NCBI GenBank assembly: GCA_013416795.1
Contig: RQSC01000523.1
Span: forward strand, 105,712-134,829
Reading direction: 5' to 3'
Length of the DNA: 29,118 nt
From: Prasinococcaceae sp. CCMP 1430
Lineage: Eukaryota > Plantae > Prasinodermophyta
Position 1 is the first letter of the stretch. Each line of letters starts with the position of its first letter. This document shows positions 44 to 27,007 of the stretch, piece after piece. The notes below the pieces were generated by a model that saw nothing but the letters and a program-made list of their open reading frames with translations, was not told the origin of the DNA and did not search any database. The translations under genes were made by a program, and so were the position numbers.

Positions 44-1340
44 ATGGTGGCGCACTGGGCGCCGAAGGGGGCGGGGGGCGGGAGCGGCGGCCTGCGCGCT
101 TTCACGTCGCGCCACGAGGCGGGCGAGCAGCTCTGGGACGCGGAGGCCGCGGGCGGGCGATTGGACGATTGCTTTGTGCCCACGGCCGGACGGCCCGTGT
201 CGCTCTCCCTCCCAGAGCTGGAGCGGTGCTCGGTGGACGTGTGCGGCAGGACGATCCCGTTGCACCAGCCGCGGGACATCGATGCGGTCCTCGACCAGTA
301 CGTGGAGGCGAATGCGCTGGGATCCGATCCGTACTGGGCGAGGCTGTGGCCCTCGGCGCTGGCCATCTCCGAGGAGGGTGCGCACCGCGCGCCCGCGCGA
401 GCCCGCGCGCGCCTGTCGCCGCGCGCGCCGCAGACGCCAATGCGCGCGGGGCGCGGTCGCCAACAGCAGGGTTCGCCTGGCTGACTCGCGCCATGCGGTG
501 CCGCGCCGCGCCGCGCCGCGCGGACCCGCAGTGCTCCGACACCCCGAGATCGTCAGGGGGCTGCACGTGGGCGTGCTCGGGTGCGGCCTGGGCGTCGAGG
601 GCCTCGCGGCTGCCGTCGCCGGGGCGGCCCGCGTCACGCTGCTCGACCGCGAGTCGACCGCACTGGCCTGTGCGGTGCGCTCGGCAGCGGAGCTGGGCTA
701 TGTGTCGAAGGAGCTGGCGAACATGGAGCCCATCGACGTGCCCGTCGCGCGCGAGTGCGAGCGGGAGTTCGACCGCTGCTTCGGGATCCGGCAGACGCGC
801 AACGCGGAGGCGTTCATGTCGGTGGTGCGCTCGCATCGAGACGTCATTCGCGCCGAGTTGTTCGATTGGAATCACGTCAGTGAGGATGCCAAGCCGCGCT
901 TCGACGTGCTCCTCGCGTCCGACGTGATCTACGAGAGCGGGGCGGTGTCACCCGTCGTGGGCCTGGTCCCGCGGCTCCTCAAGCCCCCCAGGCGCAACGC
1001 CAACAACGAGCTCTGCGGCGGCGTGCTGCTCGCGGGCGATCCCCCCCACCGCACGCCGGCGAACAGGGCGAAGTTCATCGCGGCCATGAAGGAGGTGCAT
1101 GGCATGGTGATGGCCTCGCGCGCGCACAGGGTGAAGTGCACCGTGTGCGCGGACGACGCTCTCAGTAGCGCCCCCGTGACGTGCGACGAGGACGGCATGA
1201 CGGATGAGGTGGTGCTCATGGCCGGACGCCTGCCGCGTCGCAAGAGCAGGAAGCAACACCATCACCACGGGCACCATCGCGAGGACCACCACAACAAGTC
1301 GTCCGCGCACCGGTCCATCTGGATGCGTCACGTCGACTGA
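44..1340 (+). CDS. SAM-dependent protein (lysine) methyltransferase, Methyltransf_16 / METTL20-21-like; 2 exons (44-377, 532-1340), about 380 aa; may extend 5' beyond the window
   Basis: PYWARLWPSALAIS joins VLRHPEIVRGLHVGVLGCGLG in frame across a GTGCGC...CCGCAG intron (378-531, phase 1, CTGAC branch at 481). Downstream motifs VTLLDRE and FDVLLASDVIYE. The frame is open from position 2, so the true start may be upstream. TGTAA follows at 1413. Confidence 0.85.
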
Positions 1341-1412
1341 GGCGTCTCGTTGGGCCAACTGCCATCCCGGCGGGCCGACGCCGAAGCGACGCACCCCTGT
1401 ACAGAACCTCAC

Positions 1413-1417
1413 TGTAA
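1413..1417 (+). terminator. TGTAA green-algal poly(A) signal
   Basis: TGTAA(CA) about 70 nt after the methyltransferase stop. UGUAA is the known chlorophyte near-upstream polyadenylation element. Confidence 0.6.
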
Positions 1418-1587
1418 CAAACCAGTTTTTGAAGCGCCTCCTCCGAGTTCATCGCGCGCACGCGCGCTTCGCGCGATGGCCACGCGCGAGCCGAAGGAGC
1501 GCACGCGCCTGTGCGCGCGGCCAGCCCGGCCAAGCCCGCCCGCCCCCCCCCCCTCCCCCGGGACGTCCCTTTGCTCTCCTAGGTTTG

Positions 1588-1592
1588 TTACA
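1588..1592 (-). terminator. TGTAA poly(A) signal for LSM8
   Basis: + strand TTACA (minus TGTAACA) about 50 nt downstream of the LSM8 stop. Confidence 0.6.
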
Positions 1593-1642
1593 AGCAGCGC
1601 TCAACGACCGCGGGGCGGGCTGCGGGGCGCGCGCCCGGCGCC

Positions 1643-1939
1643 CTAGTGCTGCACCGGCTTGAGTGGTGCGGCCTTGATCTTGTCGAGTTCCAGCTGCGCG
1701 TCCAGGTCCTCGTCGAGCTCGCCGACGATGGCGATGGTGTCACCGCGGATTAGGTACACGCCCAGCACGTGCTGCACGACGCCCTCGGCGCTCGAGTAGA
1801 CGCGCTCGTGCGAGTCGTCGAGGATGAGGTTGGTCGTCTGGTCGAAGCCCTTGAGCACGCCAACGATGTTGCGCCCGTCGTTCGTAATCACGCTGATCAC
1901 GTTGCCGACGAGCGGCTCGAGCGCCGCCGCCGCGCTCAT
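1643..1939 (-). CDS. LSM8: U6 snRNA-associated Sm-like protein LSm8, 98 aa, intronless
   Basis: VISVITNDGRNIVGVLKGFDQTTNLILDDSHERVYSS...LGVYLIRGDTIAIVGELDEDLD...IKAAPLKPVQH: Sm1/Sm2 motifs plus the LSm8-specific ERVYS and C-terminal PLKPV.H. Confidence 0.95.
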   Translation of the reverse strand: MSAAAALEPLVGNVISVITNDGRNIVGVLKGFDQTTNLILDDSHERVYSSAEGVVQHVLGVYLIRGDTIAIVGELDEDLDAQLELDKIKAAPLKPVQH

Positions 1940-1980
1940 CGCTGCCGCCGCCGCGCCGCGCTCCGGCTGTCGCCCCGCGC

Positions 1981-2306
1981 NNNNNNNNNNNNNNNNNNNN
2001 NNNNNNNNNNNNNNNNNNNNNNNNNNNNNNNNNNNNNNNNNNNNNNNNNNNNNNNNNNNNNNNNNNNNNNNNNNNNNNNNNNNNNNNNNNNNNNNNNNNN
2101 NNNNNNNNNNNNNNNNNNNNNNNNNNNNNNNNNNNNNNNNNNNNNNNNNNNNNNNNNNNNNNNNNNNNNNNNNNNNNNNNNNNNNNNNNNNNNNNNNNNN
2201 NNNNNNNNNNNNNNNNNNNNNNNNNNNNNNNNNNNNNNNNNNNNNNNNNNNNNNNNNNNNNNNNNNNNNNNNNNNNNNNNNNNNNNNNNNNNNNNNNNNN
2301 NNNNNN
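1981..2306. other. Assembly gap (326 N)
   Basis: Run of N. Confidence 1.

Positions 2307-2397
<91 letters not shown>
2307..2397 (+). repeat. 91-nt poly-G run abutting the gap, probably a sequencing or gap-filling artefact
   Basis: Pure G homopolymer starting at the first base after the N run. Confidence 0.7.
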
Positions 2398-2398
<1 letters not shown>

Positions 2399-2419
2399 GG
2401 CGGACGCGCGTGCGCAGCG

Positions 2420-5400
2420 ATGTCGGCGGAGGGATGGGACCCGCTCGAGGCGGCCGGCGCGCCGCCGCCGCAGGCGTCGTGGAGCGCGTGCGTCGAGCGG
2501 CTGCGCAACTCGTCGGTGCGCGACCACCGCGCGCTCGTGGCGGCCTTCGAGGCGGCGGGCGAGATTGTGGACGCGCAGGGGCTGCCGCGCTCGCCCACGG
2601 CGTACTTCGCCTGCCTCATGCAGTCGCTCGATGCGCAGGGCCGCGCGGGCGGCGACGCCGAGGCCGCCGCCGCCGCCGCGACGCTGCTCGCGGCGGTGCT
2701 GCCGGCGACGCCGCGCGCGGTGCTGCGCTCCAAGTGTGAGATGGCGCTCGGCGTGCTCGCGCGCGTTGAGGTTGCTCACGACGGCGCACAAGCGGTGCAG
2801 AAGGCCGTGCTCGGCTGCCGCCAGCACCTCTTCTCCGCGGCCGTCGGCGCCGACGGCGGCTGGGCGGCGACCGGCGCGTCGTTCGGCGCGATGCTGCGAC
2901 GCTGCGTGGACGCGCGGCCCAAGGTGCGCAAGAGGGCGCTGGTGGCTGTGCAGGGAGGGCTGCGCGCGGCGCAGGGCACGCCCGCGCACCAGCACGCCTC
3001 TGAGGCCGTCGCGCGCCTCGTCGGCGAGGTTCTTCCCGGGGCGGCGCGCACCGACGATGCCGCGGCGGCGGTGGCCGCGGCCGCGCCCGACGGCGGCGTC
3101 AGCGAGGCGGAGCGCCGCGCGCGCGAGGCGCTGCAGCTCGTGAGCTCCCTGCGCTCGCTGGTGCCCCTGCTGGATGCGCGCGCGGCGTCCACCGTGGCGA
3201 ATGCGCTCGCCGCGCTCCTCACTGCCTCGCGCGACCGCCAGCCCATGCTGCACAAGCTGGTGGTGGACGCGGCCGCGATGCTCTTCGCCGACCTGAGCTC
3301 CGACATGGGCGTGGCACCCGCCGAGGGGCTGCTGGGCGCGGTGCTCTCGTCGCCCATCAATGCGCGCAAGGACCCCGACGGCGCGGCGGCGCTCTGCCGC
3401 CTGACGGCCACCGCCATGCGCCGCATCGGCTCCCTGGACGGCTCGGCCGCCGCGCGCTTGCTGCCCCGCGCGCTGCACGCAGTGCTGCCCATGCTCGCCG
3501 AGCTCGACCACGAGGCGCTGGCGTTCGCGGCAACCGAGGCCACCGCGGACATGCTTCGCCACGTGAGCCCCGCCGCATGCGCGGCGGACCCGCCGCCGCA
3601 GGCTGGCGCGCCGGGCGCCGCGGGACCTCCGCGCACCGTCGGCGAGCGCTGCGCGGTCGCGCTGGAGAACATGCTCGGCGTGCGCCACAAGGACGCGTGG
3701 CCGCTGGTGCTCACCGCCCTCGCTGCGTTCGCCGAGGCGGTGGGCGCCGACCATCCGCAGCTGCTTGTGAGCGTGCTGGCCGCAGCCGCTGAGCTACACT
3801 CGGACAGCGCCGACCCGCTCGCAAAGGCGAACGACCTCGACCTTTTCGACGCGCAGCTCGGTGCGGCGCTCGGCGCCGCGCTGCGCGCCATGGGCGCTGC
3901 GCCCTTCCTTGCGACGCTGCCGCTGCAGATGGAGCTCGACCTGGACTCGCCGGACTCGCGCGCGTGGCTGCTGCCGCTCGTCATCGAGCACGCGAAGAAG
4001 GCCACGGGCTCGATCGGCTACTGGGTGCGCACGCTCCTGCCGGCCGCGCGGCAGCTCGAGGCGCGCGCCGACGCCTTCCACGCGGCGGGCGCGGGCCACG
4101 GGGTGGAGGCGCAGGCCGCGTACGCTGCGGTGGCGCAGCTGTGGGAGGTGCTCGCGTCAATGTGCTGCTCGCCCGACGACATCGCCACGTCCTTCCAGCT
4201 GGTGGCCAAGGACCTTGGCGCGGCGCTGCAGACCGACTCGGCCGAGCGCCGCTCAACGGCGGCGCGCGCGCTTCGCCGGCTGGCCTTTGGCGTGTCGGAG
4301 CGCCGCAAGGCCGCGCGCGAGGAGGGCGATGGCCAGGTGGTGGCGCGCGAGGATGCTGCCGCCGCGGCCATCGCGCGCTTCAGCCGCAACTTCCTGCCCA
4401 TCCTCTTCAACCTCGCGTTGGCCGCCAAGCCCGAGGAGCGCGAGGAGCTGCTCGCCACCGTCGAAGCGATCGCGCTGGTGACGCCTGCGGATGCGCTGGA
4501 CGGCTTCTTCAAGCAGGTGCTCCGCAAGCTGCTCGAGGCGACCGCCGAGGCCTCGGACGGCAACAAGAGTGCGGAGGAGAACAGCGCCGCCGCCACCCGT
4601 CAGGGCATTTTCGTCGAGCTGGCCATGTCGCTGTCCGAGGGGCTGCCAGCCGAGGCGACGGCCATGCTGCTGCGCGGCAGCCGGCCGCTGCTGAGCGCCC
4701 CGGCGGCGTCGGTGCAGAAGAAGGCGTACAAGTTGCTCGCGCGGCTGGCCGAGCGTAGGCCTGAGGTGGTCGCGGGCGCCCTCGACGAGACCGTGGCGGC
4801 CCTCGCCGACGGCCTGGGCGCGTGCGCCACCGCCGCGCGCCGCAACCGGCTACGCTGCCTGCGCCACGTCATCGCGCTGTTCGCACTCAAGCGCAGGGAG
4901 GCCATCGAGGCGGTGGAGGCCGGGCAGGGCGGTGGCGAGGGGAGCGACGGCGAGGACGGGGGCGACGGCGCGGGCGGCGCCACAGACCCGCTGCGCGCCG
5001 TGGCGCCGTTCGTGGGCGAAATCGTGCTGGGCGTCAAGGAGTCCAACCAGCGCACGCGCCTGGCGGCGTACGAGCTGTTGGTCGAGCTCGCGCGCCACAT
5101 GGAGGAGGCCGGTGGCGATGAGCTGCTGCGGCGCTTCTTCATGATGGTCGTGGGCGCGCTGGCGGGCTCAACGCAGCACATGGTGGCCGCGGCGGTCGCG
5201 GCGCTCGCGCGGCTTCTCTTCGACTTTCCCGAGGCGCTGCTCGAGGCGGCGCCCGAGCTCATGTCGACTGTGCTGCTGCTGCTTCGCTCCAAGTCGCGGG
5301 AGATCGTCAAGAGCGTGCTGGGCTTCTGCAAGGTGCTCATCTCGAGATTGTCGCCCACCGAGATGACGCTGCTGCTGCCCGAGATGGCCGAGGGGCTCTT

Positions 5401-6541
5401 CGCTTGGTGCGACGACAGCAAGAACCAGTTCAAGATGAAGGTGCGCGTGCTGGTGGAGCGCCTCGTGCGCAAGTGCGGCTACGAGGCCGTGCAGGCGGCC
5501 ATCCCCGAGCACCACGCGCGCCTGCTCGTGCACATCCGCAAGGAGAAGGCCAAGGAGGAGCGCAAGCGCCAGGCGCGCTCGGAAGTGCGCGCTGGCGACG
5601 ATGCGAAGTCGGGGCGCACGACGCGCACCGCGATGACCGCGATGACGGCGCGCACTCTCGCCAGGGACTGGGCGGAGGACGATGTCTTCGGCGACGGCGG
5701 CTCGGACGAGGGCATGGGCGGCGCGAGCGACGAGGACATGGACGGCGGCAGGGGCGGCGGCGGAGGAGGCTACGCGAGATCTATGATGGCGCGCTCGCGC
5801 GCTCTGAGCAGCGTCGCTGCCGGTGCGCGTCGAAAGGTGGTGCTGCCCGACTCGGACTTCGACCTGCTGGGCGGTGGCGCCACGCGCGCGGCGCTTGCGG
5901 GTGCGGCGGCCCTCAAGGAGCGTCGCCTGGCACGGCGGCGCGCGCAAGGCGAGGACGACTTCGGCGTGGACAAGAAGTCTGGCCGCCTCGACTTCAGCGA
6001 GGTGGGCGGTAAGGGGCGCGCGGCGAAGCGCGGCCGCGATGTGGACTACGACGACGACGACGACGAGATGGAGGGGGACGAGGAGGGCGACGAGGGCGAC
6101 GACGACGATGACACGCGCTCCAAGAAGCGCGCACGCGGTGGCAAGGCGCGCAGCGTGTCGGGCATGAGCATGGGCGGGCGCTCGGCGCGCACTGTCGGGG
6201 GTCGCTCGGCGCGCACGGCGGGGGGCAGGTCGGCCGGCGGCCGCAGCGCCAAGTCCAACCGCGCGGGCACCGGCCGCGAGTACGCCTCGGCCAGGGCGGG
6301 CGGTGACAAGCAGCTCGCCGCCGAGAAGCACGAGCCGTACGCCTACTGGACGCTGGATGCCGCGCTGCTCAACAAGAAGCGCGCGGGCAAGAAGGCGCAG
6401 GCAATGCGGCAGATGGCGAGCACGGGACGTCTGGGCGCCAACAAGGAGCAGAGAAACAAGGCCTCGCTCGGCAAGGGCACCCGCGCGCAGCGCAAGGCCA
6501 AGGCCAAGCACAGGGCGATGGAACGGGCAGGCGAGCGCTGA
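2420..6541 (+). CDS. RRP12: RRP12-like ribosome biogenesis HEAT-repeat protein, 1373 aa, apparently intronless
   Basis: N-terminal SPTAYFACLM and DARPKVRKRA; NFLPILFN; SVQKKAYK; VLGVKESNQRTRLAAYELL; SKSREIVKSVLGFCKV; FKMKVRVLVERLVRKCGYEAV...LLVHIRK; disordered D/E- and K/R-rich tail containing EPYAY. Confidence 0.9.
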   Translation: MSAEGWDPLEAAGAPPPQASWSACVERLRNSSVRDHRALVAAFEAAGEIVDAQGLPRSPTAYFACLMQSLDAQGRAGGDAEAAAAAATLLAAVLPATPRAVLRSKCEMALGVLARVEVAHDGAQAVQKAVLGCRQHLFSAAVGADGGWAATGASFGAMLRRCVDARPKVRKRALVAVQGGLRAAQGTPAHQHASEAVARLVGEVLPGAARTDDAAAAVAAAAPDGGVSEAERRAREALQLVSSLRSLVPLLDARAASTVANALAALLTASRDRQPMLHKLVVDAAAMLFADLSSDMGVAPAEGLLGAVLSSPINARKDPDGAAALCRLTATAMRRIGSLDGSAAARLLPRALHAVLPMLAELDHEALAFAATEATADMLRHVSPAACAADPPPQAGAPGAAGPPRTVGERCAVALENMLGVRHKDAWPLVLTALAAFAEAVGADHPQLLVSVLAAAAELHSDSADPLAKANDLDLFDAQLGAALGAALRAMGAAPFLATLPLQMELDLDSPDSRAWLLPLVIEHAKKATGSIGYWVRTLLPAARQLEARADAFHAAGAGHGVEAQAAYAAVAQLWEVLASMCCSPDDIATSFQLVAKDLGAALQTDSAERRSTAARALRRLAFGVSERRKAAREEGDGQVVAREDAAAAAIARFSRNFLPILFNLALAAKPEEREELLATVEAIALVTPADALDGFFKQVLRKLLEATAEASDGNKSAEENSAAATRQGIFVELAMSLSEGLPAEATAMLLRGSRPLLSAPAASVQKKAYKLLARLAERRPEVVAGALDETVAALADGLGACATAARRNRLRCLRHVIALFALKRREAIEAVEAGQGGGEGSDGEDGGDGAGGATDPLRAVAPFVGEIVLGVKESNQRTRLAAYELLVELARHMEEAGGDELLRRFFMMVVGALAGSTQHMVAAAVAALARLLFDFPEALLEAAPELMSTVLLLLRSKSREIVKSVLGFCKVLISRLSPTEMTLLLPEMAEGLFAWCDDSKNQFKMKVRVLVERLVRKCGYEAVQAAIPEHHARLLVHIRKEKAKEERKRQARSEVRAGDDAKSGRTTRTAMTAMTARTLARDWAEDDVFGDGGSDEGMGGASDEDMDGGRGGGGGGYARSMMARSRALSSVAAGARRKVVLPDSDFDLLGGGATRAALAGAAALKERRLARRRAQGEDDFGVDKKSGRLDFSEVGGKGRAAKRGRDVDYDDDDDEMEGDEEGDEGDDDDDTRSKKRARGGKARSVSGMSMGGRSARTVGGRSARTAGGRSAGGRSAKSNRAGTGREYASARAGGDKQLAAEKHEPYAYWTLDAALLNKKRAGKKAQAMRQMASTGRLGANKEQRNKASLGKGTRAQRKAKAKHRAMERAGER

Positions 6542-6676: not shown

Positions 6677-8605
6677 CTAGAACATGCCCGGACCCCGTGT
6701 CGGCGTCGCGGTGGGTAGCGGCGGCGGGAAGCAGCCGAGCGCGCAGCACTGCGTGCCCTGGATGGTGCCCGCGTCGAGGCACTTCACCCCCCCGGTGCCG
6801 TCGCCCTTGAGCGCTGGACGCTCGCCGTCCGGGCACTGCCCCGGCCACGATGACTCGATCCAGTAGTAGTCGTTGGGGTCGCACAACCCGTGGCCCGGCT
6901 CGAGCTCCGAGGCGTAGCCGAACTGCTCTCGGGTGCAGAGCGCCGCGCCCACCGACGCGCACATGGCCGCGGAGTTCACGTAGTTGGTGTTGGTGCACAC
7001 GCCCGGCAGCCAGCCGCCCGCGCGGGAGGTGCACACGCCGTCCGCGTTGTCCAGGGGGTCGGTCCAGTTCTTGGCCGCGTCGAAGATCTTCACCGACTCG
7101 GCGATCTCCTCGCAGCACTGCACGAAGCGCGTGGGCGCCGCCGTGGGCATTGCCGTGGGCGCTGCGGTGGGCGCTGGCGTGGGGCACGTCGCGGACGCGC
7201 AGCACGCGACGGCGCCGAGGAAGGCGTCGCGCGTGCACTCGAAGGTGCCCGAGGCCGGATTGTACGCGATGTGCTCCTTGTCCCCGCAGCGGCCGGTCTG
7301 CAGATTCCACTGCTCGCGCGTCCACAGCATCGCGTTGCTGAAGTCGCAGCCCGTGCCCTCGGTGGCGGGCAGCTCGGCCGCGCTGCACAGGTCGGCGTTG
7401 ACGGTCTGGCACATGGCTTGCGCGGTGTGGAAGGTGGTTGCCTTCACGCACTGGTCGGCGAACCAGCCGCCCTTGGTGGCGCCGCACACGCCGGGCACGC
7501 CGTTTTTGCCAGTCTCGCCCCAGCACTGGCCTCCGAGGACGGGATCGCACTCGCCGAGCCAGCGCTGCAGGTTGGGGCAGCAGCCGATCTCGGGGGGCAT
7601 GCCGGCCTGCATCTCCGTGGTCGGCGCCTTGGTGGGCGAGGCGGTCGGCGCTGTCGTAGGGGCGATCGGCCTGGGGACGATAGGATCGGTGAGCACGATG
7701 AAGGAGTCGAACTGGCCCAGCGCAGAGTTCGGGTCGCCGCCCGCCGCAAGCTGCAGGGCCGACTGGATGATCGCTTGCGTCGCAGGCGTGGTGCCCGGCG
7801 GGGCAAGGACGGTGTACGTGAGCTGGGTAGTTTCAATGCCTTCGTTGAGGAATGTTGAGCAGCTGAGATGCGAAGCGCGAGGTCAAAGTCGCGTGCGTTG
7901 GCGGAGCGACGGACCGGCCAACGAGTGAAAAGCGCGCGTGTGGGGGTGGGGGGAATGCGCGGAGGGCGATGGGGATGCGCGCGGCATGCAATGAGGTCAG
8001 CGCGCAATCTCGAGCACGTGGTCGTCAGGTCTCCGCTTTCGCGGCCTATCGCGCGCTTGGGCACGCATGCGCCCGTCATGAAGCATTCGCGGTCGGTCAC
8101 GAGCCTCCGCGCGCCACCAACGCAGCACCGCCAGTTGTGCATCTGCGAGGGCACACCACCAAACGCCTCCGCCGCCGCGCGCACTTTCACAGCCCCGCAC
8201 TCACCTCACGTCCACGAACGCAATGGGCGTGGGAGAGCCTTGAACGGCGTACACTGTGTTCTCGTAGATACTGAGGATCTGCAGCTCCAGGAGGGGGCAG
8301 CTCGGATTGACCTGCGCAGCGACCACGCTCGCGGGTCCATTCTGCTGCTGCTGCTGACCGGTGAACTCGTCCTTGGAGATGGGGACGATCGGCAGTGGGA
8401 GGGGCACCGCGCCTGGCGGTGCAGTGACATCCAGGGGCGGCCCAACGAGACCAGCGACGCGCGTCACGGACGCGCTGAACGCCACCGACATTGCCGCGGC
8501 CGTCGCTACCACGCTGGCGGCGCCCGCCACCCGCCGCATGGCGCCGCGCTCGGCGGCGCGCCCCCGCGCGCCCATGCCCATGGCGGCGGCGAAGGATTCC
8601 GCCAT
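6677..8605 (-). CDS. Putative secreted/cell-surface protein with two tandem Cys-rich domains and PT(A/T)-rich linkers; 2 exons (8605-8205, 7862-6677), 528 aa
   Basis: AG|GTGAGT donor at 8204 and TCTCAG acceptor at 7863, with a TTGAC branch, join the 8201-8605 ORF in frame to the 6677-7696 ORF. N-terminal hydrophobic stretch; two homologous 12-14-Cys domains separated by PTAAPT repeats. Confidence 0.75.
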
Positions 8606-8710
8606 CAGTATTCATATCTTTCCCCTTTCGGATACGCCCTCGCGTCCGCTCCCGCCCCGCGCGCGCCCGCGAGGCGACGCCGCCAATTCCCCGGCGAGCG
8701 GAGCTCCCGA

Positions 8711-8752
8711 GGCCGCGCGCGCGCGCGCGCGCGCGGCCGCGCGCGCGCGCGC
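8711..8752. repeat. (CG)n tracts forming a perfect 28-bp palindrome GGC(CG)11GCC, followed by a further 15-nt alternating CG tract
   Basis: Read directly: 8711-8738 is self-complementary; 8738-8752 alternates C/G. Confidence 0.9.
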
Positions 8753-8873
8753 TCGAATTCACCCCCCATCAAAACGCACGCGGGGCGCGCCGCGCCGCGG
8801 ACAGAGCCGTTACGACCCCTATCGGCATCCCGCCATCGCTATCGATGCGCGTAAATGCGACGCAATGTGGTGC

Positions 8874-8889
8874 GATATAATATTATATC
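8874..8889. promoter_or_regulatory. 16-bp perfect AT-rich palindrome GATATAATATTATATC in a divergent intergenic region
   Basis: Self-complementary; lies in a 44% GC island (61/140 at 8861-9000). Function is inferred only. Confidence 0.4.
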
Positions 8890-9233
8890 AATCAATGTCT
8901 GATGCGGCGCGATGCCATTTGATCCCCACCGAAAGCTTCATAAAAATCGCATCGTCTGGCAATGCCTGGTCACGACATTGATATGGTATTGTACAGTGTA
9001 CGTTTGCGCACAACACGGCTAGGCCTGTGTCGCGTCATCAGGTCAGGCAGCATCAGCAGGCGCCAATCCGTTGGAAGTCTATAGTGGACTACGAACTCGT
9101 GTCATTTGATGGCGTTCGGGGAGGGGTCAGGTTTCAGGCAGGCGGCAGCGCGCGCCCAACGGCTGGGCGTGGCCCCGCAACCCCACTGGCACACGCGACG
9201 TCAGTCGACGGTTGGGCGGAGGTGACGAGGTAA

Positions 9234-9779
9234 CAACGCCGCGCTGCCGGCGGGAGCGCGCGCGCGCCGCCTCGGGCGCGCCGCCGAGAGGCGCGGCGGT
9301 GCGGCGCGGTCGCCGCGGGCCTGGGGGTTGCGGCGGTGGTGGGGGGGGCGCTGCTGTGGTGGACGTCCTCGTACGAGGCGTCGTCCGCGGGCGTCCGCGC
9401 GGCGTTCGACGAGCGCGCGCGCGCCTACCGCTCGGTCTACGTCGAGCGCTTCGAGCGGACGCGCTGGCTGCTGCGCGTCGGTGAGGGCGGCGAGACGGAG
9501 CTCGATAAGGTGGAGGAAGACGAGGCTGACCGCTTTCTCCAGGGCAGCCTGCACTCGGGCGCGCGAGGGGGCGACGTGGACTCGGCCAGCGTGCGCTTCG
9601 CGACGGGCGACGCCGCGCTGCGGGGCGGCGCGGGGCGATGCTGGGCGCGCGTCAGTGCTGTGTGCTGCCCGCACGCCAAAAAGGTACCGCAGGGCAGGAC
9701 AGGCCTTTTGGAGGCACCGTGTGTGTGGTGGTGGTGGGCGCGTGAGAGAGGCGGCGCGCCCGGCCGCGCGTGCGCCAGC
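9234..9779 (+). other. Coding-like, ATG-less segment in frame with the downstream oxidase (TM helix followed by a charged helical region)
   Basis: Open frame from 9234. RRCGAVAAGLGVAAVVGGALLWW then TSSYEASSAGVRAAFDERARAYRSVYVERFER, with strong G/C-ending codons to about 9640. No in-frame ATG before 9780. Confidence 0.35.
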
Positions 9780-11457
9780 ATGTTGCCGCCTCCCAGCTCG
9801 GACGAGTTTGCGGACCTGCGGTCGGCGCTGAGCGGAGACGCCGCGCTGGTGGTGCGTCCCCCCGCCTCCGCCGCCGCCGATCAGCAGGCCGAGGCGTACG
9901 AGCGCGCCCTGTGGGGCGCCAAGTGGGATGTGGCGCAGCTGAAGCGCCGAAGCTCGGGCTGGTCGCGGGAGGCCAACGGGACCAACACATGGAACGTCGA
10001 CGGCTTGGAGGAGCGCATGCCGGCGGCCATCGCCTCGCCCGCGAGCGCGCGGGACGTCGCCGAGTGCGTGCTCTACGCCGCGGCCAGGCGCTCCGAGGGC
10101 CAAAGGCTGTGCGTGGCGGGCGGGCGCTTCTCGCAGCTCTCGCTCGCCGAGGGCGCGCTGTGCATCGACCTGTCGCGCATGCGAAGCGCTCGCTGTGACG
10201 CCACAACCGGCACCGTCGTCGCACAGGGTGGGTGTCTTGTGGGCGACGTGATGAGCGCGTGCCAGCCGCACGCGCTTGCGGTGCCGCTCGGCGCGCACCC
10301 AGGCACGGGCATCGGCGGGCTGGTGCTGCAGGGCGGGCACGGCTGGCTGGAACGAAGCGCCGGGCTCGCGGTGGATGCGCTGCTCTCGGCACAAGTCGTG
10401 CTCGCGTCGGGAGACATCATGCGCGCCAGTGCCGACGAGAACGCGGATCTGTTCTGGGCCATCCGAGGCGGCGGCGGCGGCTTCGGCGTCGTCACCGAGT
10501 TCGTCTTTCGGGCCGCGCCCGTCGGCGAGGCCGGTCAGGTACAGCGCATAACGAAGGTGTACGTCCCGCTCAAGGCCTTCTCGGCCCTCCGATTCCAGCC
10601 GTCGCGACTCGAATGCCTGCGCAACTTCCGCGACGCATGCATCGCGGTGGATGGCGTCGACGAGCTCGCAATGGAGGCGGTCGTACTCGTCGGGGGGCCG
10701 ACGATCGCGAGCATGGTGAGCTTCAGCAGCAGCCTCGCACGGGGCGAGGCCGCGCTCAAGGAGCACGGGCGGGCATTCCAAAAGCTACGGGCGGTCGCCA
10801 ACGCGCTCAAGCCTTGCTCGTATCACGACGGGCTCATGTACGACGTATTCAGCCCTTCGATGGAGGCGAACCTCCAGAGCAGGTATTACCGCACCGGCAG
10901 CCTGCACGAGGACCTGCCCGACGCAGCTCTGAAGGCCATCTCTGACGCCACCTCGGGCAAGCAGCCGTGCTCCAAGGGCACTCAAGTGCTCATCACGCTG
11001 CTGGGGGGCAAGGCCAAGCGGTGCGTCGTCGGGACGCGCGCGCCATGGCATCGCCCATCCCTCGAATCTCAATGGCGAGGGCGACGCTCCAGCCGCTGAA
11101 GGCACCCACTGACCGACGCCCGCCCGCGCGCGTGCGCTCACGACTCACTCGCTCACGTGCAGCGTTCCCGATCACGCCACGGCGTACGCGCACCGGCGTG
11201 CGATGTTCTGGGTGACCATCACGACGTACCTCCCGCCGCCCAAGGCCGGCAAGGGCAAGCGCACAGACGCCATCCGATGGGCAGAAGACCTGCGTGCCAA
11301 GCTCGCGCCGCACGCCATGCATGAAAGCACCAGCAGCGGCCCGCACTCCGGGCTGGCGCTGCCGCCACCACGTGGCCACCACGCGGAGAGGCTGCGGGAC
11401 TTGAAGGCGCGCCTGGACCCCGCGAACGTCTTCAGCTCGGTGCAGCCCATCGCGTGA
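9780..11457 (+). CDS. FAD-linked oxidoreductase, berberine-bridge-enzyme/VAO-like (FAD_binding_4 plus BBE C-terminus); 2 exons (9780-11020, 11163-11457), 511 aa
   Basis: PAAIASPASARDVAECV; GALCIDLSRM; VVAQGGCLVGDV; GIGGLVLQGGHGWL; DALLSAQVVLASG...ENADLFWAIRGGGGGFGVVTEF. The GTGCGT...GTGCAG intron (11021-11162) restores RVPDHATAYAHR. C-terminal RLRDLKARLDPANVF. Confidence 0.88.
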
Positions 11458-18993: not shown

Positions 18994-21765
18994 CTATCGC
19001 TCACCGAGGTCGCCGGTGGCCACGACGGTCGCCGCGTCAGAGAGATGTTTGACGAAGCCACCTTGCTCCTTCACGGCCTTGAGCTGATCACCGACCAGTG
19101 GCTCGCGCTCAAGCTTCAAGCAGACGACGCTTATGTCATCGGGCTTGTGCTGCTCTCGGCGACGCAACGTTGCAACGTAGCTCAGCCGCCGGGCGGCGCG
19201 CGAGCACGACTTGGCTCTGCGCTGTCTCGCCATGACTTCGTGGTCTTCCAGCATATCCCAGAGCCCGTCAGACGCGACAGTCACCAACATGCGAGTCGTT
19301 GCGGGGGCGAGCGTGTTCAGGTCGAAGCGGGATATGTATGGCTTTGCGTTCACCGCGGGGTGTGCCTTCCCGTCGCCCAGCGAGCGGCTAACCGCCAGTC
19401 CCCCAGGCCATGCTCGCAGAGGCCCGACTTCCACACCCGACGAGCGCTCGCGCAGGCGTGACACCTTGGCGCCTCCCAACCGCAACCGCCTCACCTCTGA
19501 GGGACTGTCGTCAAGGCGGTGGTCCACAGTCAGCCTGAACGTGTGCTCGCGCCTTTGAAACAAATTGATGCCCAGCACCCCGCACGACATCGGCATCTCA
19601 ACTCCCCCTTCGGGCAACCCGATGACGCCGCGCGAGTCACCCACGTTGGCAGTGGTGATAATGCCATCGCGGATGACCATAGCAGTGGCAGTGCAGCCCG
19701 CGCGCGTCTGACTCTCCTTGGTCAGCGCATCTATCTCCGCCATTGCCTTCGACAGGGCCTTGGGGAGCGCCTCGCTCATTCCGCGGCGCTTGCGCAGCCG
19801 CGTCGACAGCGCCGACAGCAGTGCCCAGGGAAACCGCTCGCGTGCAAGCTCGGCCGCCTCGAACCCAGCATGGCCGTCGAACACGCATACCAGCGTGGCA
19901 TTGCCCAGTTCACCCGCGCGCCACTGCGAATCGGACATAGCGCCCTCGCCATTCCCCCCTCCGTCGGGTGACGGCAGCACAAGGACGCGGTCTTCTCCCT
20001 TCGCAGTGACCGTGGCCGCCTTCACCTCAACGTTCCAGTCCTTGCGCTCGTCCAGGAAGCGCACCCTCGTCCTGGAGGCACTAGTGCGCCGCTTGCCTTC
20101 GGGGACCACGCCGCACAGGCAGTGTTTCAGCCACTTCCACTGCGCGCGCATGACGACGTAGGCGTGCTCCAACTGGTGGGAGAGCTCATCGGCCATCGTC
20201 AGCGGGGCGCTCAGGAAGTCGTACAGCGGCTCGATCCCATTGAGGAGGTCCATGTCCACATTGGTGTACGACAGTGCTGCATCACCCGGCGTCCTGTCGC
20301 TCGCATCAGAACTTGCGCGGGCGACAGAGCCGTCGGGCACAGACGCATCGGGGCTCTCGCGCTCGGCCGAGGCCCTCGCGCGCTCGCCCTCCTTCGCCTT
20401 GCGCCGCTGCACGACACTTATCGACCGCAGGTTTTGGACGAACTTGAGCAACTCACCGCGATCAAACGGTCCTGAGTTCAGCACCGACTGGTCGACCCCA
20501 GGCAGGAACTCAAACTTGTTGTTGCTATCGGACCTCTCCGAGCTTCCGGAGGAAAATCCGGAGGAAAAGGACCCGCAGATCGAGTTCGAGGGAGAGTCCA
20601 CCATGGTTCGTAATCTTCGCCTCCTCAGAGACGCCTTGAGGGACGGCCACGCGAACAGGCTCGAGGTGCCGAGGAAGCTCATCGCACAGACGGTGACCAC
20701 CACTGCCAGTGCGTGCAAGAGCCGCATGCCCGCACCGCCCATCGCGTCGGCGGCCTCCTGCCCGTAGGTCAGCGAGACGAGGTGAGGCTGCGCGAACACC
20801 CCGCCCAGCAGCATGCCAACGAGGCCGCCAACAAGGTGTGAGGCAATGATGTCGAGTGCGTCGTCGATGCGCAGGTACGCGAGCCCGTACACCGAGGCCA
20901 CAAAACCGAGGCCGGCGACCGCCCCCACCGCCACAGACCCTCCCGAGGAAAGCACGGGGGCGCCGCACGCCACCGCCGCCGTGCCCGCGATGGCACCACG
21001 CACGCACGTCGATGCTGGCAACGCACCGCCATACCCTTTCAGCTTGCTCACGAGCACCGATCCCGCCGCTGCGGCCGCAGACCCGGCCGCCGCCGCAAGC
21101 ACCGTGCACAACAGTGTGCGCCCCAAGAAGTCGGGCATCGCTGCTGCCCACGGCGCCGCGCCGCACGCTGAGAGCGACAGTCCCCACATCGCCATCAAGC
21201 CGCCAATGCCGGAGAGCGCCTCGTCGTGTCCCTCGAAGGCACCGCTGAAGGGCTTGCCCGCCGCGTCACGCGTGCCACCGGTGATGGCGCTGGCCTTGAG
21301 GAGGCTCGCCGCGCCCGCGTTTGCCTTCTCGTCGAAACGTCTGCGTCCCTGCGAGTCCTTGCGCGGCCCGACGAAGACCGCGCACGCCAGCGCCGCGGCG
21401 CCGCTCACGATGTGCAGCGGGCCGCAGCCGGCGATGTCGAGCGCCGCCGAGCGCGCGCCGCTCTCCGGAGCGAAGAGCGCGCCCGGCGCCCACTCGAGCC
21501 GCATCGCGAGCGGGCTGAGCACCCCACCGACGAGCGTGCCGACCATCAGGACGTTCAAGGCCGAGAAGGCGCGCTCGGCCATGCCGGCCACCGCGAAGGT
21601 CGCCGCGAGGCCCGCGAGCGCCGCCACGTGCAGCCGCGCGACGCCGGCCTCGACGCCCATGTTTGCGCCGACGCCCGTCGCGGCCCCGGCGGCTGGATAC
21701 GTTTCGTGGCCGGCCACTCGCCACCCGAAGAGGCCGAACGCCGCGAGCGCCGCGGTCGTCGCCAT
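18994..21765 (-). CDS. Ammonium transporter (Amt/Mep/Rh)-like domain fused to a PP2C/PPM Ser/Thr phosphatase; single ORF, 923 aa from ATG 21765 (997 aa from the alternative ATG 21987)
   Basis: Amt motifs: AGMAER, LDIAGCGPLHIVSGAAAL, GPR, GAIAGTAAV, IDDALDIIASHLVGGLVGMLLGGVFA (about 21765-20640). PP2C motifs: KGEDR, VFDGHAG, GCTA, ANVGDSR, LTVDH, GGLAVSRSLGD, VASDGLWD, DDISVV (about 20030-19090). No stop codon between the two domains. Confidence 0.9.
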   Translation of the reverse strand: MATTAALAAFGLFGWRVAGHETYPAAGAATGVGANMGVEAGVARLHVAALAGLAATFAVAGMAERAFSALNVLMVGTLVGGVLSPLAMRLEWAPGALFAPESGARSAALDIAGCGPLHIVSGAAALACAVFVGPRKDSQGRRRFDEKANAGAASLLKASAITGGTRDAAGKPFSGAFEGHDEALSGIGGLMAMWGLSLSACGAAPWAAAMPDFLGRTLLCTVLAAAAGSAAAAAGSVLVSKLKGYGGALPASTCVRGAIAGTAAVACGAPVLSSGGSVAVGAVAGLGFVASVYGLAYLRIDDALDIIASHLVGGLVGMLLGGVFAQPHLVSLTYGQEAADAMGGAGMRLLHALAVVVTVCAMSFLGTSSLFAWPSLKASLRRRRLRTMVDSPSNSICGSFSSGFSSGSSERSDSNNKFEFLPGVDQSVLNSGPFDRGELLKFVQNLRSISVVQRRKAKEGERARASAERESPDASVPDGSVARASSDASDRTPGDAALSYTNVDMDLLNGIEPLYDFLSAPLTMADELSHQLEHAYVVMRAQWKWLKHCLCGVVPEGKRRTSASRTRVRFLDERKDWNVEVKAATVTAKGEDRVLVLPSPDGGGNGEGAMSDSQWRAGELGNATLVCVFDGHAGFEAAELARERFPWALLSALSTRLRKRRGMSEALPKALSKAMAEIDALTKESQTRAGCTATAMVIRDGIITTANVGDSRGVIGLPEGGVEMPMSCGVLGINLFQRREHTFRLTVDHRLDDSPSEVRRLRLGGAKVSRLRERSSGVEVGPLRAWPGGLAVSRSLGDGKAHPAVNAKPYISRFDLNTLAPATTRMLVTVASDGLWDMLEDHEVMARQRRAKSCSRAARRLSYVATLRRREQHKPDDISVVCLKLEREPLVGDQLKAVKEQGGFVKHLSDAATVVATGDLGER

Positions 21766-21987
21766 GATGAGGCGCACCGCCGCGGCGGCCGCGCCGCCGC
21801 GCTGGTTGGACGCCGCGCCTCCCGCGGCGGCCGACCTCGCGCGGCGGCGGCGGCGGCGGCGGCGAGGAGGAGGAGGAGGAGGCGCGCGCGAGCGGGGGCC
21901 CCGGCCGCGTTCCCCGATCTTTTCCGCCGCGCCCGCGGCGCTCGCCCCCTCGCGCGCCCTCCTTCGCCGCACCACGCACCGCGCCAT

Positions 21988-22692
21988 GCAAATACCCACG
22001 GGAGACCATATTTGACCTAAAAATGCATTGGGGCGCGGGGCGCCGCGCGGGGCGCCATCGCCGGCCGGGAGGGTGCTGCGTTCCTCCCGGCCGGCCCCCG
22101 GCCGGAGCCCTGCGAGGACATTCGGATTCGGATTCGCATGCATTCATTTGGGAGGAACAAAAAAGAGGTGCGCGGGCGCGGGCGGGGTGCGTTTTGCCCT
22201 CGCCGCGTTCCCCGAGCGCGCGCGTTCCCCGAGCGCGCGGATTTTTTTTGGGTTTGGGGGCGGGGCGGCCGCGGCGGCGGCCCACAACTTCAGNNNNNNN
22301 NNNNNNNNNNNNNNNNNNNNNNNNNNNNNNNNNNNNNNNNNNNNNNNNNNNNNNNNNNNNNNNNNNNNNNNNNNNNNNNNNNNNNNNNNNNNNNNNNNNN
22401 NNNNNNNNNNNNNNNNNNNNNNNNNNNNNNNNNNNNNNNNNNNNNNNNNNNNCGGCGCGCGCGCTCGGGGCGCGCTCGCGGCGTTCGGGCGCGGCGACGC
22501 GAGGGCGCGCATCGGCAGCCCCCCCCCCCCCATCCCCCCCCCTCCCTCTTGCAGCCACCGACCTCACCGTCTCGCTCGCGCCGAGCTGCACTCGCGGCCG
22601 CGGCAGCAGGGGGCGGGACGGGCTGGGGCGGAGAGGCGGGAGCAGACGGAGAGGCGCAGCTCGCGCGCGCGGGGCCTGCCATCGCCGTCGCG
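21988..22692. promoter_or_regulatory. Putative bidirectional promoter shared by the Amt-PP2C fusion and AMT1
   Basis: Divergent starts. Contains (ATTCGG)n at 22120-22136, a 17-bp tandem duplication at 22204-22237 and an N-gap. Confidence 0.5.
22294..22452. other. Assembly gap (159 N)
   Basis: Run of N. Confidence 1.
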
Positions 22693-24660
22693 ATGGTCGA
22701 GGGCGACACCGCCGCGCCCACCCTGGAGGAGATGCTGTTGCGGGTCGGCACGGCCGAGCGCGCGGTGGACGCGCTGTGGGTGACCTTTGCGACGGCCATG
22801 GTGCTCTTCATGCAGATGGGCTTCGCCGCGCTCGAAGTTGGCGCGGTGCGCACGAAGAACACGCGCACGATCTTGCTGAAGAACATCCTGGACTTTTCGG
22901 TGGGCACGCTGACGTTCTGGGCCCTCGGGTACGGCGTCGCGTACGGCGGCGGCAACAACCAGGCGGGCGGGAGGTCGGGCTATTTCCTTTCGGACACGCT
23001 CGTGCCCCAGGTCAGCGACGGCGAACCAATCACCGCCGACGACCTCCCCGCGGCGGCAGCCGAGGGCACCTTCGCGCACTTCACGCTGCTGCTGGCGTAC
23101 GCGTGCACGTCCACCACCATCGTGTCGGGCGCGCTCGCCGAGCGCGTGCGCCTGCGCGCCTTCCTCATCTTCACCGGGCTCAGCTGCTGGATCCTGTCGC
23201 CGCTGCCCATGCGCTGGACGTGGTACACGGGCGGCTGGCTCAACGCCAGCGCGTTGAGCACGACGTACACCGAGGGGCGCGCGCTCTTGGACGTGGGCGT
23301 GGTGGACTTCGCCGGCGCGGGCGTGGTCCACGCCGTGGGCGGCTTCTGCGCGCTGGTGGCCGCCAAGATGGCCGGCCCCAGGCTCGACGAGCGCGGCGTG
23401 AAGCGCTTCGAGAAGGGCGTGCGCGAGCACGACTTCGCGCCTCACGGCCCTGCGCTGTCCATCATCGGCGCGCTGTGCCTCCTCTTCTCGTGGTACGGAT
23501 TCAACGCGGGCTCCACCCTGGCCATCGTCGGCCAGGAGGACGTCGTCGCGTCGGTGCTCGTCACCACGACGCTCTCCGGCGCGAGCGCGATGATCGCCGG
23601 CAGCGCGATGCTGCTCGCCTCTTCGGGCTCCGCCAACGCGCTCGACCTGACCAACTGCCTGCTGGCGGGGCTCGTGGGCGTCACCGCCGGCTGCGCGGTG
23701 TTCGAGGCGTGGGCGAGCGTGGTGACGGGAATCCTGAGCAGCGCCGTGTACATCGGCGCCTCCAAGCTGCTCAAGCGCTTCAAAGTCGACGACCCGCTGG
23801 ACGCGAGCGCGCTGCATGGCGCATGCGGCAGCTTCGGCGTGGTCGCCGTGGGGCTCTTCGCCTCTTCGGACCTGATCGAGCAGGTGTACGGCCCGGGCAC
23901 CGGCGAGCACTACGGTCTGCTGCTGGGCGGCGGCTGGCGGCGCTTCGGCGCGCAGACTGTCGGCGTGGTGGTGTACGCCGCGTGGAGCCTCGCCTTCTCG
24001 GTGCTGCTCTTCTACGCCCTGAAGTACTCGGACCGCGCCTTCGAGTTGGGCAAGCGGATGGTCACCGGGAAGCCCTGCGAGGAGTCCGTGCCCAACGAGA
24101 GCGCCGAGGACCGCGAGCGCCGCGTGGGCAACGGCCTGCGCGTGAGCAGGGAGGTCGAGATGAGCGGCATCGACGTGTCGCACCACGCGGGGCTGCCCTA
24201 CCCGCCCTACCTGGCGCCCTTCATCGACAGCGTTAATATCGTGCGCGAGCTGCAGCTGGCGTCGCTCGAGCAGTCGGACCCGGTGCCCGCACCCGCGCAC
24301 GACGGCCCAGGGGGCGCCACCAGCAGCCCGGCCTCGTCCCCGGGCGCGCCCCGTGCGGACGACGGCAGCTTCCACGAGTTCAACCTGCTGCTGCGTCCGC
24401 GCGTCAACGACCTCAAGGACGACACCGTGCACGGGGCCAGCTCCGTCGACGAGATGCTGGGCGATGCGATCGACCCCGCCGAGGTCGCGGGCGGGACGCC
24501 GCACGCGGTCGACGAGGACGGCGTGCGCTTGCAGGGCGTCGCGGGCGGCGGGGACGGGGACGGGGGCGAGGCGGCCGAGGGGGGCGATGAGACGGGCGAG
24601 GACGGGGACGGGACGGGCGAGACTGGGAGGAAGCCCGAGGAAGCCGCAGCAGCATCCTAG
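22693..24660 (+). CDS. AMT1: AMT1-type ammonium transporter, 655 aa, apparently intronless
   Basis: FMQMGFAALEVGAVRTKN...LKNILD; IVSGALAER; VDFAGAGVVH; WYGFNAGST; LLAGLVGVTAGC; VDDPLDASALHGACG; C-terminal LRVSREVEMSGIDVSHHAG; long acidic tail. Confidence 0.95.
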   Translation: MVEGDTAAPTLEEMLLRVGTAERAVDALWVTFATAMVLFMQMGFAALEVGAVRTKNTRTILLKNILDFSVGTLTFWALGYGVAYGGGNNQAGGRSGYFLSDTLVPQVSDGEPITADDLPAAAAEGTFAHFTLLLAYACTSTTIVSGALAERVRLRAFLIFTGLSCWILSPLPMRWTWYTGGWLNASALSTTYTEGRALLDVGVVDFAGAGVVHAVGGFCALVAAKMAGPRLDERGVKRFEKGVREHDFAPHGPALSIIGALCLLFSWYGFNAGSTLAIVGQEDVVASVLVTTTLSGASAMIAGSAMLLASSGSANALDLTNCLLAGLVGVTAGCAVFEAWASVVTGILSSAVYIGASKLLKRFKVDDPLDASALHGACGSFGVVAVGLFASSDLIEQVYGPGTGEHYGLLLGGGWRRFGAQTVGVVVYAAWSLAFSVLLFYALKYSDRAFELGKRMVTGKPCEESVPNESAEDRERRVGNGLRVSREVEMSGIDVSHHAGLPYPPYLAPFIDSVNIVRELQLASLEQSDPVPAPAHDGPGGATSSPASSPGAPRADDGSFHEFNLLLRPRVNDLKDDTVHGASSVDEMLGDAIDPAEVAGGTPHAVDEDGVRLQGVAGGGDGDGGEAAEGGDETGEDGDGTGETGRKPEEAAAAS

Positions 24661-26219: not shown

Positions 26220-27007
26220 NNNNNNNNNNNNNNNNNNNNNNNNNNNNNNNNNNNNNNNNNNNNNNNNNNNNNNNNNNNNNNNNNNNNNNNNNNNNNNNNN
26301 NNNNNNNNNNNNNNNNNNNNNNNNNNNNNNNNNNNNNNNNNNNNNNNNNNNNNNNNNNNNNNNNNNNNNNNNNNNNNNNNNNNNNNNNNNNNNNNNNNNN
26401 NNNNNNNNNNNNNNNNNNNNNNNNNNNNNNNNNNNNNNNNNNNNNNNNNNNNNNNNNNNNNNNNNNNNNNNNNNNNNNNNNNNNNNNNNNNNNNNNNNNN
26501 NNNNNNNNNNNNNNNNNNNNNNNNNNNNNNNNNNNNNNNNNNNNNNNNNNNNNNNNNNNNNNNNNNNNNNNNNNNNNNNNNNNNNNNNNNNNNNNNNNNN
26601 NNNNNNNNNNNNNNNNNNNNNNNNNNNNNNNNNNNNNNNNNNNNNNNNNNNNNNNNNNNNNNNNNNNNNNNNNNNNNNNNNNNNNNNNNNNNNNNNNNNN
26701 NNNNNNNNNNNNNNNNNNNNNNNNNNNNNNNNNNNNNNNNNNNNNNNNNNNNNNNNNNNNNNNNNNNNNNNNNNNNNNNNNNNNNNNNNNNNNNNNNNNN
26801 NNNNNNNNNNNNNNNNNNNNNNNNNNNNNNNNNNNNNNNNNNNNNNNNNNNNNNNNNNNNNNNNNNNNNNNNNNNNNNNNNNNNNNNNNNNNNNNNNNNN
26901 NNNNNNNNNNNNNNNNNNNNNNNNNNNNNNNNNNNNNNNNNNNNNNNNNNNNNNNNNNNNNNNNNNNNNNNNNNNNNNNNNNNNNNNNNNNNNNNNNNNN
27001 NNNNNNN
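26220..27007. other. Assembly gap (788 N)
   Basis: Run of N; hides the 5' ends of CtpA and probably of the ankyrin gene. Confidence 1.

Follow-up and report, generated by a model that had tools for sequence, protein, structure and literature searches.

A 29,118-nucleotide stretch of the genome of the green picoalga Prasinococcaceae sp. CCMP 1430 (contig RQSC01000523.1, positions 105,712 to 134,829; this whole stretch is called the window below) carries on its minus strand a real, conserved, single nuclear eukaryotic gene for a protein of ~990 residues that joins an Amt-like membrane module to a PP2C protein phosphatase. The gene arrangement suggests a previously undescribed eukaryotic link from ammonium to protein dephosphorylation. 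On balance we favor the reading that the product is a receptor-phosphatase functionally tied to the AMT1-type transporter encoded beside it, a membrane-anchored PP2C that would be coupled to ammonium and/or to a partner transporter.

The longest open reading frame (ORF) of the region, 18994..22143 on the minus strand, runs stop-free for 1049 codons and holds both domains in one frame, as the original prediction had proposed. Pfam places PF00909 (Ammonium_transp) at residues 276-499 of the ORF (E 3.2e-26, 92 bits against a cut-off of 23.2) and PF00481 (PP2C) at residues 747-992 (E 1.9e-28, 100 bits against a cut-off of 20.3). A stop-free stretch is weak evidence when taken alone, because other, overlapping frames in this ~70% GC DNA also yield ORFs of 264-441 codons. 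GC content at third codon positions (GC3), the substitution pattern and homologues of the same architecture together show that the whole stretch is coding. GC3 in the fusion frame is 0.72-0.97 along the entire gene, and the coding part present in the window is 99.6% identical to positions 457-5559 of the Tara Oceans scaffold L001, whose gene differs by 7 synonymous and 2 non-synonymous changes plus one in-frame 3-bp indel. By alignment to this scaffold, the coding part spans 18994..21834 (minus strand) and corresponds to codons 45-990 of the Prasinoderma coloniale gene model PRCOL_00004094 plus the stop codon, at 18994-18996.

A search of 5.8 billion proteins returned a 100% identical match, P0001, encoded on a Tara Oceans scaffold (991 aa). 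Its cluster includes the P. coloniale model itself (EukProt EP00793, PRCOL_00004094-RA; P0003, 990 aa) and six further full-length copies from independent ENA/Logan assemblies, and copies of 990-991 residues occur in at least seven independent Tara/Logan assemblies. The sequence of the fusion protein is therefore already public as a gene model, yet unnamed. These matches also show that the genome is that of P. coloniale. The original prediction had allowed for a separate PP2C gene starting at the internal ATG 20604, or for a misassembly in the linker between the domains. That ATG falls in a gap of the alignment with the ortholog P0002 and is not conserved, and the linker has a continuous coding signal and the same architecture in independent assemblies.

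One part of the gene is missing from the window. Positions 1-116 of L001 align to window 21953-21835 and positions 457-5559 to window 21833-16734, and the ~340 bp between them (L001 117-456) are absent between 21834 and 21835. This missing segment carries the true ATG (L001 324) and the first 44 codons, which encode helix 1; the codons have no match anywhere in the window and are present in the gene model P0003, the Tara copies and P0002. The in-frame upstream extension of the ORF (21835..22143, minus strand), including ATG 21987, is non-coding because the true N-terminus sits in the missing segment, and the extension is not coding in any homologue. The start codon first assigned at 21987 is thus wrong, a read-through of non-coding DNA upstream of 21834. 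The break at 21834/21835 lies within GCC/GCG repeats, and the missing ~340 bp represent either an assembly collapse or a deletion allele. Loss of helix 1 from the protein was considered and rejected, since the helix is encoded in the segment absent from the window. Three runs of N occur in the window (1981-2306, 326 bases; 22294-22452, 159 bases; 26220-27007, 788 bases), and the low-GC bins of its composition profile are these gaps, not AT-rich DNA.

The search of 5.8 billion proteins also returned P0002, a protein of 994 aa with both domains that matches the window protein at 48% identity over 99% coverage. Downstream of P0002, its contig carries the gene that also follows the fusion in the window, in matching orientation; in the window this convergent gene has an ARID domain (Pfam). 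P0002 is thus a positional ortholog, found in a related alga. When 1.84 billion representatives were scanned exhaustively with HMMER, three proteins only reached E <= 1e-30. Among the matches listed, both domains were present in P0021 (47% identity), P0022 (1092 aa), P0027, P0028 and the fragment P0267. P0021 falls into one cluster with P. coloniale PRCOL_00000477, which makes it a paralog from this species, 40-47% identical to the window fusion. The clusters of P0022 and P0027 contain MMETSP transcripts, namely Transcript_3695 (1099 aa, flagged complete) and Transcript_28494. Because a complete MMETSP transcript from a distant member covers both domains, the fusion architecture has transcript-level support in other cultured marine eukaryotes. 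We refer to the three Prasinoderma-type fusions (P0001, P0002, P0021) as group A and to the distant fusions as group B, which was missed by a word-indexed profile search that drew its words from the first 500 residues only. The view of the locus as one eukaryotic fusion gene is borne out by this conservation in an ortholog, a paralog and distant relatives, including the MMETSP transcripts.

Amt-PP2C fusions are rare. They form about six clusters at 50% identity among 1.84 billion proteins, including two MMETSP transcripts and a few environmental contigs, and when metagenome contigs were searched with family-specific peptide patterns, an Amt gene lay near 1 of 80 PP2C loci. Picoplankton metagenomes of Tara Oceans have repeatedly yielded the fusion gene, and it may for that reason be of ecological relevance. 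At the one exceptional metagenome locus (L090), a canonical AMT1-like gene (140-1726) and a separate PP2C gene (2706-3647) lie on one strand, the PP2C gene ~1 kb downstream, with stops in all frames of the spacer. We considered this locus as a pre-fusion state and set it aside: its PP2C sits on a branch of 3.7 changes per site without clear affinity, and one locus in 80 could be chance. The transcript-sized contig of P0022 (L010, GC 62%) terminates at 3783-3795 in CCCTAAACCCTAA, a plant-type telomere-like repeat. The paralog's public model P0170 (1288 aa) seems to run the fusion together with a downstream DUF2064 gene; on the Tara scaffold L009 the latter is a gene call of its own.

The PP2C catalytic domain (19024..20034, minus strand; residues 646-982) is a C-terminally fused transducer enzyme, cytoplasmic by predicted topology. 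Its motifs (K)GED, DGH, GDSR, SRSLGD, SDGLWD and DD had all been named in the original prediction; they are present in the translation and invariant in the six fusion proteins. The invariant metal-site residues are E659/D660, D698-H700, D778, D901/D905 and D944/D945, whose metal-binding roles are assumed to be those in PP2C-alpha. With this metal site intact, the PP2C is predicted to be catalytically competent. The AlphaFold2 (AF2) model of the domain is confident, and Foldseek matches it to ABI1, ABI2, HAB1 and PP2CA at template modelling (TM) scores of ~0.7-0.8 and 20-24% identity, with ABI1 and PP2CA at ~0.8. As a qualification of the AMT/PP2C regulatory pair in the original prediction, orthology to ABI1 is not demonstrable at ~24% identity (~20-24% to ABI1/HAB1) in a PP2C tree built without Arabidopsis clades, and the nearest kin are unnamed green-lineage PP2Cs. 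The nearest stand-alone PP2Cs of group A are unnamed sequences of Mesostigma, Chara, Chlorokybus and Bryopsis, and those of group B come from Tetraselmis, Botryococcus and others.

The linker of ~190 residues (20035..20598, minus strand) is supported by the alignment, the AF2 model and its GC3 of 0.77-0.87. Directly after the last transmembrane helix, TM11, comes a Ser-rich tract in which 12 of 30 residues are Ser and AF2 confidence is low, followed by a long predicted helix (504-541) and then by conserved helices (573-619) ahead of the PP2C domain. The segment LLNGIEPLYDFLSAPL within helices 573-619 is identical in the ortholog P0002. In group B, a GxDx(T/S)xH regulatory motif is clear after TM11 in P0187 and P0028, at 0 to 1 of 1000 shuffles.

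The Amt-like membrane module occupies 20599..21834 (minus strand) in the window, where residues 45-456 with helices 2-11 are encoded; it is supported by Pfam PF00909, the AF2 model, Foldseek and a residue table. AF2 predicts 11 transmembrane helices for the complete protein (predicted local distance difference test, pLDDT, of 75 for the full-length model; pLDDT 82 and predicted TM score 0.86 for the domain model). Foldseek aligns the Amt model to Ks-Amt5, Sd-Amt1 and Af-Amt1 (6eu6, 8qj3, 2b2f) at TM scores of 0.74-0.77 over ~440 columns, and across matches that also include Mep2 and AmtB, ~430-456 columns align at TM scores of 0.7-0.77. These models point to a complete but remodelled 11-helix Amt fold.

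Pore residues were compared by mapping NB1, the AMT1-type protein encoded next to the fusion, to Sd-Amt1 numbering and then aligning it to the fusions. P0001 keeps the twin His (H185 and H377), W159 (W148 in AmtB, W139 in Sd-Amt1) and D177 (the D160 equivalent), and the same holds for P0002 and P0021. In all three members of group A, F98 is replaced by L, F221 by S, S225 by A and the exit N269 by R; the Phe gate (F107/F215 in AmtB) and S219 are thus absent, with L, S and A at those positions. An exit-position Asn is already restrictive in Sd-Amt1 (PMC11152129). That the external recruitment site and the twin His persisted along so long a branch speaks for a continuing role of ammonium entry into the pore, and loss of the gate, S219 and the exit Asn (now Arg) argues that efficient transport is unlikely. 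Group B is more canonical; P0184, for example, keeps F221 and the exit Asn.

The six fusions, NB1 and NB2 (the corresponding neighbor of the paralog) form one clade when analyzed in a tree alongside 78 other Amts, with a support of 97 in the Shimodaira-Hasegawa-like approximate likelihood ratio test (SH-aLRT), and the stem branch of group A measures 3.6 changes per site. Other eukaryotic AMTs were absent from the references, and we therefore consider only two conclusions safe: the fused Amt module is nearer to the AMT1-type genes of the alga itself than to the sensor Amts of bacteria, and it originated independently of bacterial Amt-SpoIIE fusions. Within group A the Amt membrane helices are 51-57% identical between orthologs and 40-44% between paralogs, compared to 55% and 45% for the PP2C domain. 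The Amt module is not decaying, because its helices are as conserved as the phosphatase, and its remodelling occurred once and has since been maintained. In the PP2C tree, group A and most of group B form separate clades on a weak backbone, and a constraint joining all fusions is not worse (lnL +3.0, p-AU 0.58).

Both P. coloniale fusion copies lie head-to-head with a stand-alone Amt gene. In the window, NB1 (22693..24660, plus strand; within the ORF 22138..24660, plus strand) faces the fusion across a shared divergent intergenic region that includes the 159-N assembly gap (22294..22452). NB1 is a full, canonical AMT1-type ammonium transporter by Pfam (E 6e-83), alignment to Sd-Amt1 and the residue table, and is the probable partner of the fusion. 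On L009, NB2 (4524-6329, minus strand) faces the paralog fusion (6969-9980, plus strand) at a distance of 640 bp. NB1 and NB2 share 53% identity and form sister branches of the Amt tree, and P0001 has its closer relative in P0002, not in the paralog; the pair was therefore duplicated as a unit before the species split, and both copies kept the arrangement. The ortholog contigs all stop at most 366 nt upstream of the fusion, and the group B contigs are transcript-sized. A search for shared cis-elements in the two divergent promoters found only GC-rich low-complexity words in common, both regions containing assembly gaps.

All six ligands of the N1/N2 site, discussed below, are present in NB1 and NB2, and plant AMT1s are also reported to carry this ligand set. 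The tails of both neighbors end in ...EMSGIDVS(H/Y)H... (GIDVSHH in NB1), which aligns with the plant motif GMDMpTRHGGFA and places a Ser at the position of T460 in AtAMT1;1. In plants, CIPK23 phosphorylates this conserved C-terminal Thr of AMT1 transporters and thereby turns transport off (PMC9516733). The functional AMT/PP2C link first proposed from the fusion alone gains support from these neighbors, since both fusion copies are head-to-head with an AMT1-type gene that keeps the T460-position Ser. A T460-like Ser motif in the fusion itself looked plausible by eye and was dropped, as shuffling was not significant in group A. NB1 has Tyr in place of the first gate Phe, and its long C-terminal extension includes a PPYLxPFIDS motif common to NB2 and group B fusions.

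Amt proteins have their N-terminus outside and their C-terminus inside the cell, so the PP2C would be cytoplasmic and beside the C-terminal regulatory region of any Amt trimer that the protein joined. Under the receptor-phosphatase reading, the Amt-like module would no longer be mainly a transporter and might bind ammonium as a receptor and/or join the adjacent AMT1 as a partner subunit. In this way it would place or control the PP2C at the membrane, coupling ammonium status to dephosphorylation. The most obvious substrate would be the C-terminal regulatory Ser of AMT1, which would be co-expressed, or the Ser-rich linker of the fusion itself.

Several points weigh against this reading. The N1/N2 ligand set (Q22, E29, N45, D48, T104, S107), the hallmark of the two characterized receptor Amts (PMC11152129), is missing from every fusion examined; in P0001, T104 alone is kept and the other positions are A, gap, L, A and V. 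The residue table rules out N1/N2-type sensing in groups A and B alike, and any sensing must therefore use another site. The claim of an ammonium sensor-phosphatase accordingly stands only in part: the fused enzyme and the AMT1 pairing speak for it, and the sensing site of receptor Amts is absent. P0187 (MMETSP Transcript_28494) lacks both pore His (now L and C), although W148 and D160, the C-terminal motif of Amts and an intact PP2C are all kept. That C-terminal regulatory motif is not detectable in group A, where 31 to 999 of 1000 shuffles did as well. As far as the sequences can tell, the PP2C tree is compatible both with one origin of all fusions and with more than one. The AMT1 pairing was seen at two P. 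coloniale loci, the only ones that could be checked, and no P. coloniale transcript of the fusion gene was found in the collections searched. Finally, the proposed function is read wholly from sequence and models.

Among the alternatives, it is unlikely that the protein is a pure tether, in which a non-sensing Amt-like module forms mixed trimers with AMT1 and delivers a constitutive PP2C to its C-terminal phospho-switch. Such a role would fit the head-to-head AMT1 partner at both loci, the T460-type Ser kept by that partner, the loss of gate and N1/N2 residues from the fusion, and the placement of the fused modules beside NB1 and NB2 and away from the bacterial sensor Amts (SH-aLRT 97). However, it depends on putative hetero-oligomerization, and a scaffold would not need W148, D160 and the twin His, which survive the long stem (3.6 changes per site) in all of group A. 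Quite unlikely is a working ammonium transporter with its own regulatory phosphatase, the PP2C keeping its own Ser-rich linker dephosphorylated. Replacement of S219 and both gate Phe in group A, an Arg at an already restrictive exit position and the canonical transporter encoded next door all argue against transport as the main role, even though the 11-helix fold is complete with its twin His, the Ser-rich tract (12 of 30 residues) comes right after TM11, and F221 and the exit Asn persist in distant members, P0184 among them.

We also regard it as very doubtful that the membrane module was re-purposed for a ligand or role unrelated to ammonium, leaving the AMT1 neighborhood as a relic of local duplication. 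The very long stem branch, the many pore substitutions and the absence of both His from P0187 would be expected in that case, whereas the retained NH4+ recruitment residues, and a gene pair that stayed together through a duplication predating the split from the species of the ortholog, would not. That two genes or a misassembly were mistaken for one ORF in GC-rich DNA is extremely improbable and was rejected: chance long ORFs are common in this DNA and the window does carry an assembly defect at 21834/21835 with gaps nearby, but the same unbroken architecture occurs in the gene model, at least seven independent assemblies, the ortholog, the paralog and an MMETSP transcript, the coding signal continues across the linker, and the internal ATG is not conserved.

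A covalent Amt-like/PP2C fusion kept beside AMT1 through duplication of the pair is independent genomic evidence of joint action. It touches on two open questions, how eukaryotes sense ammonium and which phosphatase re-activates AMT1 transporters, and it would extend the idea of Amts as receptors from bacteria to a eukaryote and to a protein without the only defined sensing site. The fusion is also a compact system that could be expressed in yeast, oocytes or proteoliposomes. Full-text literature searches found no description of an Amt-PP2C fusion, in line with the original prediction that no eukaryotic example had been characterized, and the receptor-Amt papers PMC5764959 and PMC11152129 do not mention a fused phosphatase. 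Novelty nonetheless has to be stated narrowly, since the sequence is already a public model and a bacterial Amt-SpoIIE analogue exists. Fused Amt receptors are already known; what is new is a eukaryotic Amt-PP2C without the N1/N2 site that is paired with AMT1.

Ammonium receptors in which an Amt module is fused to an output domain are established (PMC5764959, PMC11152129), and Ks-Amt5 is an ammonium sensor kinase (PMC5764959). Like Ks-Amt5 (Amt plus histidine kinase) and Sd-Amt1 (Amt plus HAMP plus diguanylate cyclase), the algal fusion combines an N-terminal 11-helix Amt with a cytoplasmic signaling enzyme and retains the outer recruitment residues and twin His, and these two proteins are among the best structural matches of its Amt model. 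Unlike them, it is eukaryotic, has a PP2C output, lacks the N1/N2 set and the Phe gate, and has an Amt module that groups with the alga's own AMT1-type genes. Fungal Mep2 is likewise a eukaryotic Amt-family protein proposed to signal ammonium status, and it is regulated through its C-terminal region. It differs in that it transports, has no fused enzyme, belongs to a cluster without N1/N2 and keeps the Phe gate.

Uncharacterized bacterial proteins offer an analogue. A profile search returned bacterial Amt fusions to histidine kinases, GGDEF/EAL domains, methyl-accepting chemotaxis proteins and SpoIIE-type PP2C-superfamily phosphatases. The Amt-(PAS)-SpoIIE proteins (P0260, P0261, P0265), like the algal fusion, have an Amt module followed by a PP2C-superfamily phosphatase, and they show parallel pore changes, with F98 replaced by L, F221 by A and the exit Asn by Arg while the twin His are kept. 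Kinase-fused bacterial Amts, unlike Amt-SpoIIE, keep canonical pore residues. The SpoIIE phosphatase belongs to PF07228 rather than PF00481 and its Amt module falls in a separate clade, which argues for independent origins, and the pore changes shared with algal group A may be convergence. A broader reading, which we offer tentatively and consider unlikely as a whole, is that Amt-phosphatase fusions constitute a second class of ammonium receptors with a distinct mechanism and independent origins in bacteria (Amt-SpoIIE) and green algae (Amt-PP2C), with a convergently remodelled pore (Phe gate removed, twin His kept, Arg at the cytoplasmic exit) in place of the N1/N2 pocket, and that the algal receptor directly resets the phospho-switch of a co-transcribed AMT1. 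If true, the plant CIPK23/ABI1 circuit would here be condensed into one protein, the first eukaryotic ammonium receptor to be defined whose output is enzymatic.

In that plant circuit, the PP2C ABI1 binds AMT1;1 and AMT1;2 and lowers AMT1 phosphorylation, and it is implicated in AMT1 re-activation, direct dephosphorylation being still untested (PMC9516733). The background on Ks-Amt5, CIPK23 and ABI1 that the original prediction drew on holds (PMC5764959, PMC9516733). The plant module uses a separate, soluble clade-A PP2C under the control of abscisic acid receptors, whereas in the alga the PP2C is joined covalently to an Amt-like module, shares ~24% identity with ABI1 and has a putative substrate only. 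In both systems, a PP2C acts or would act on or beside an AMT1-type transporter with a C-terminal Thr/Ser off-switch, a motif that NB1 keeps.

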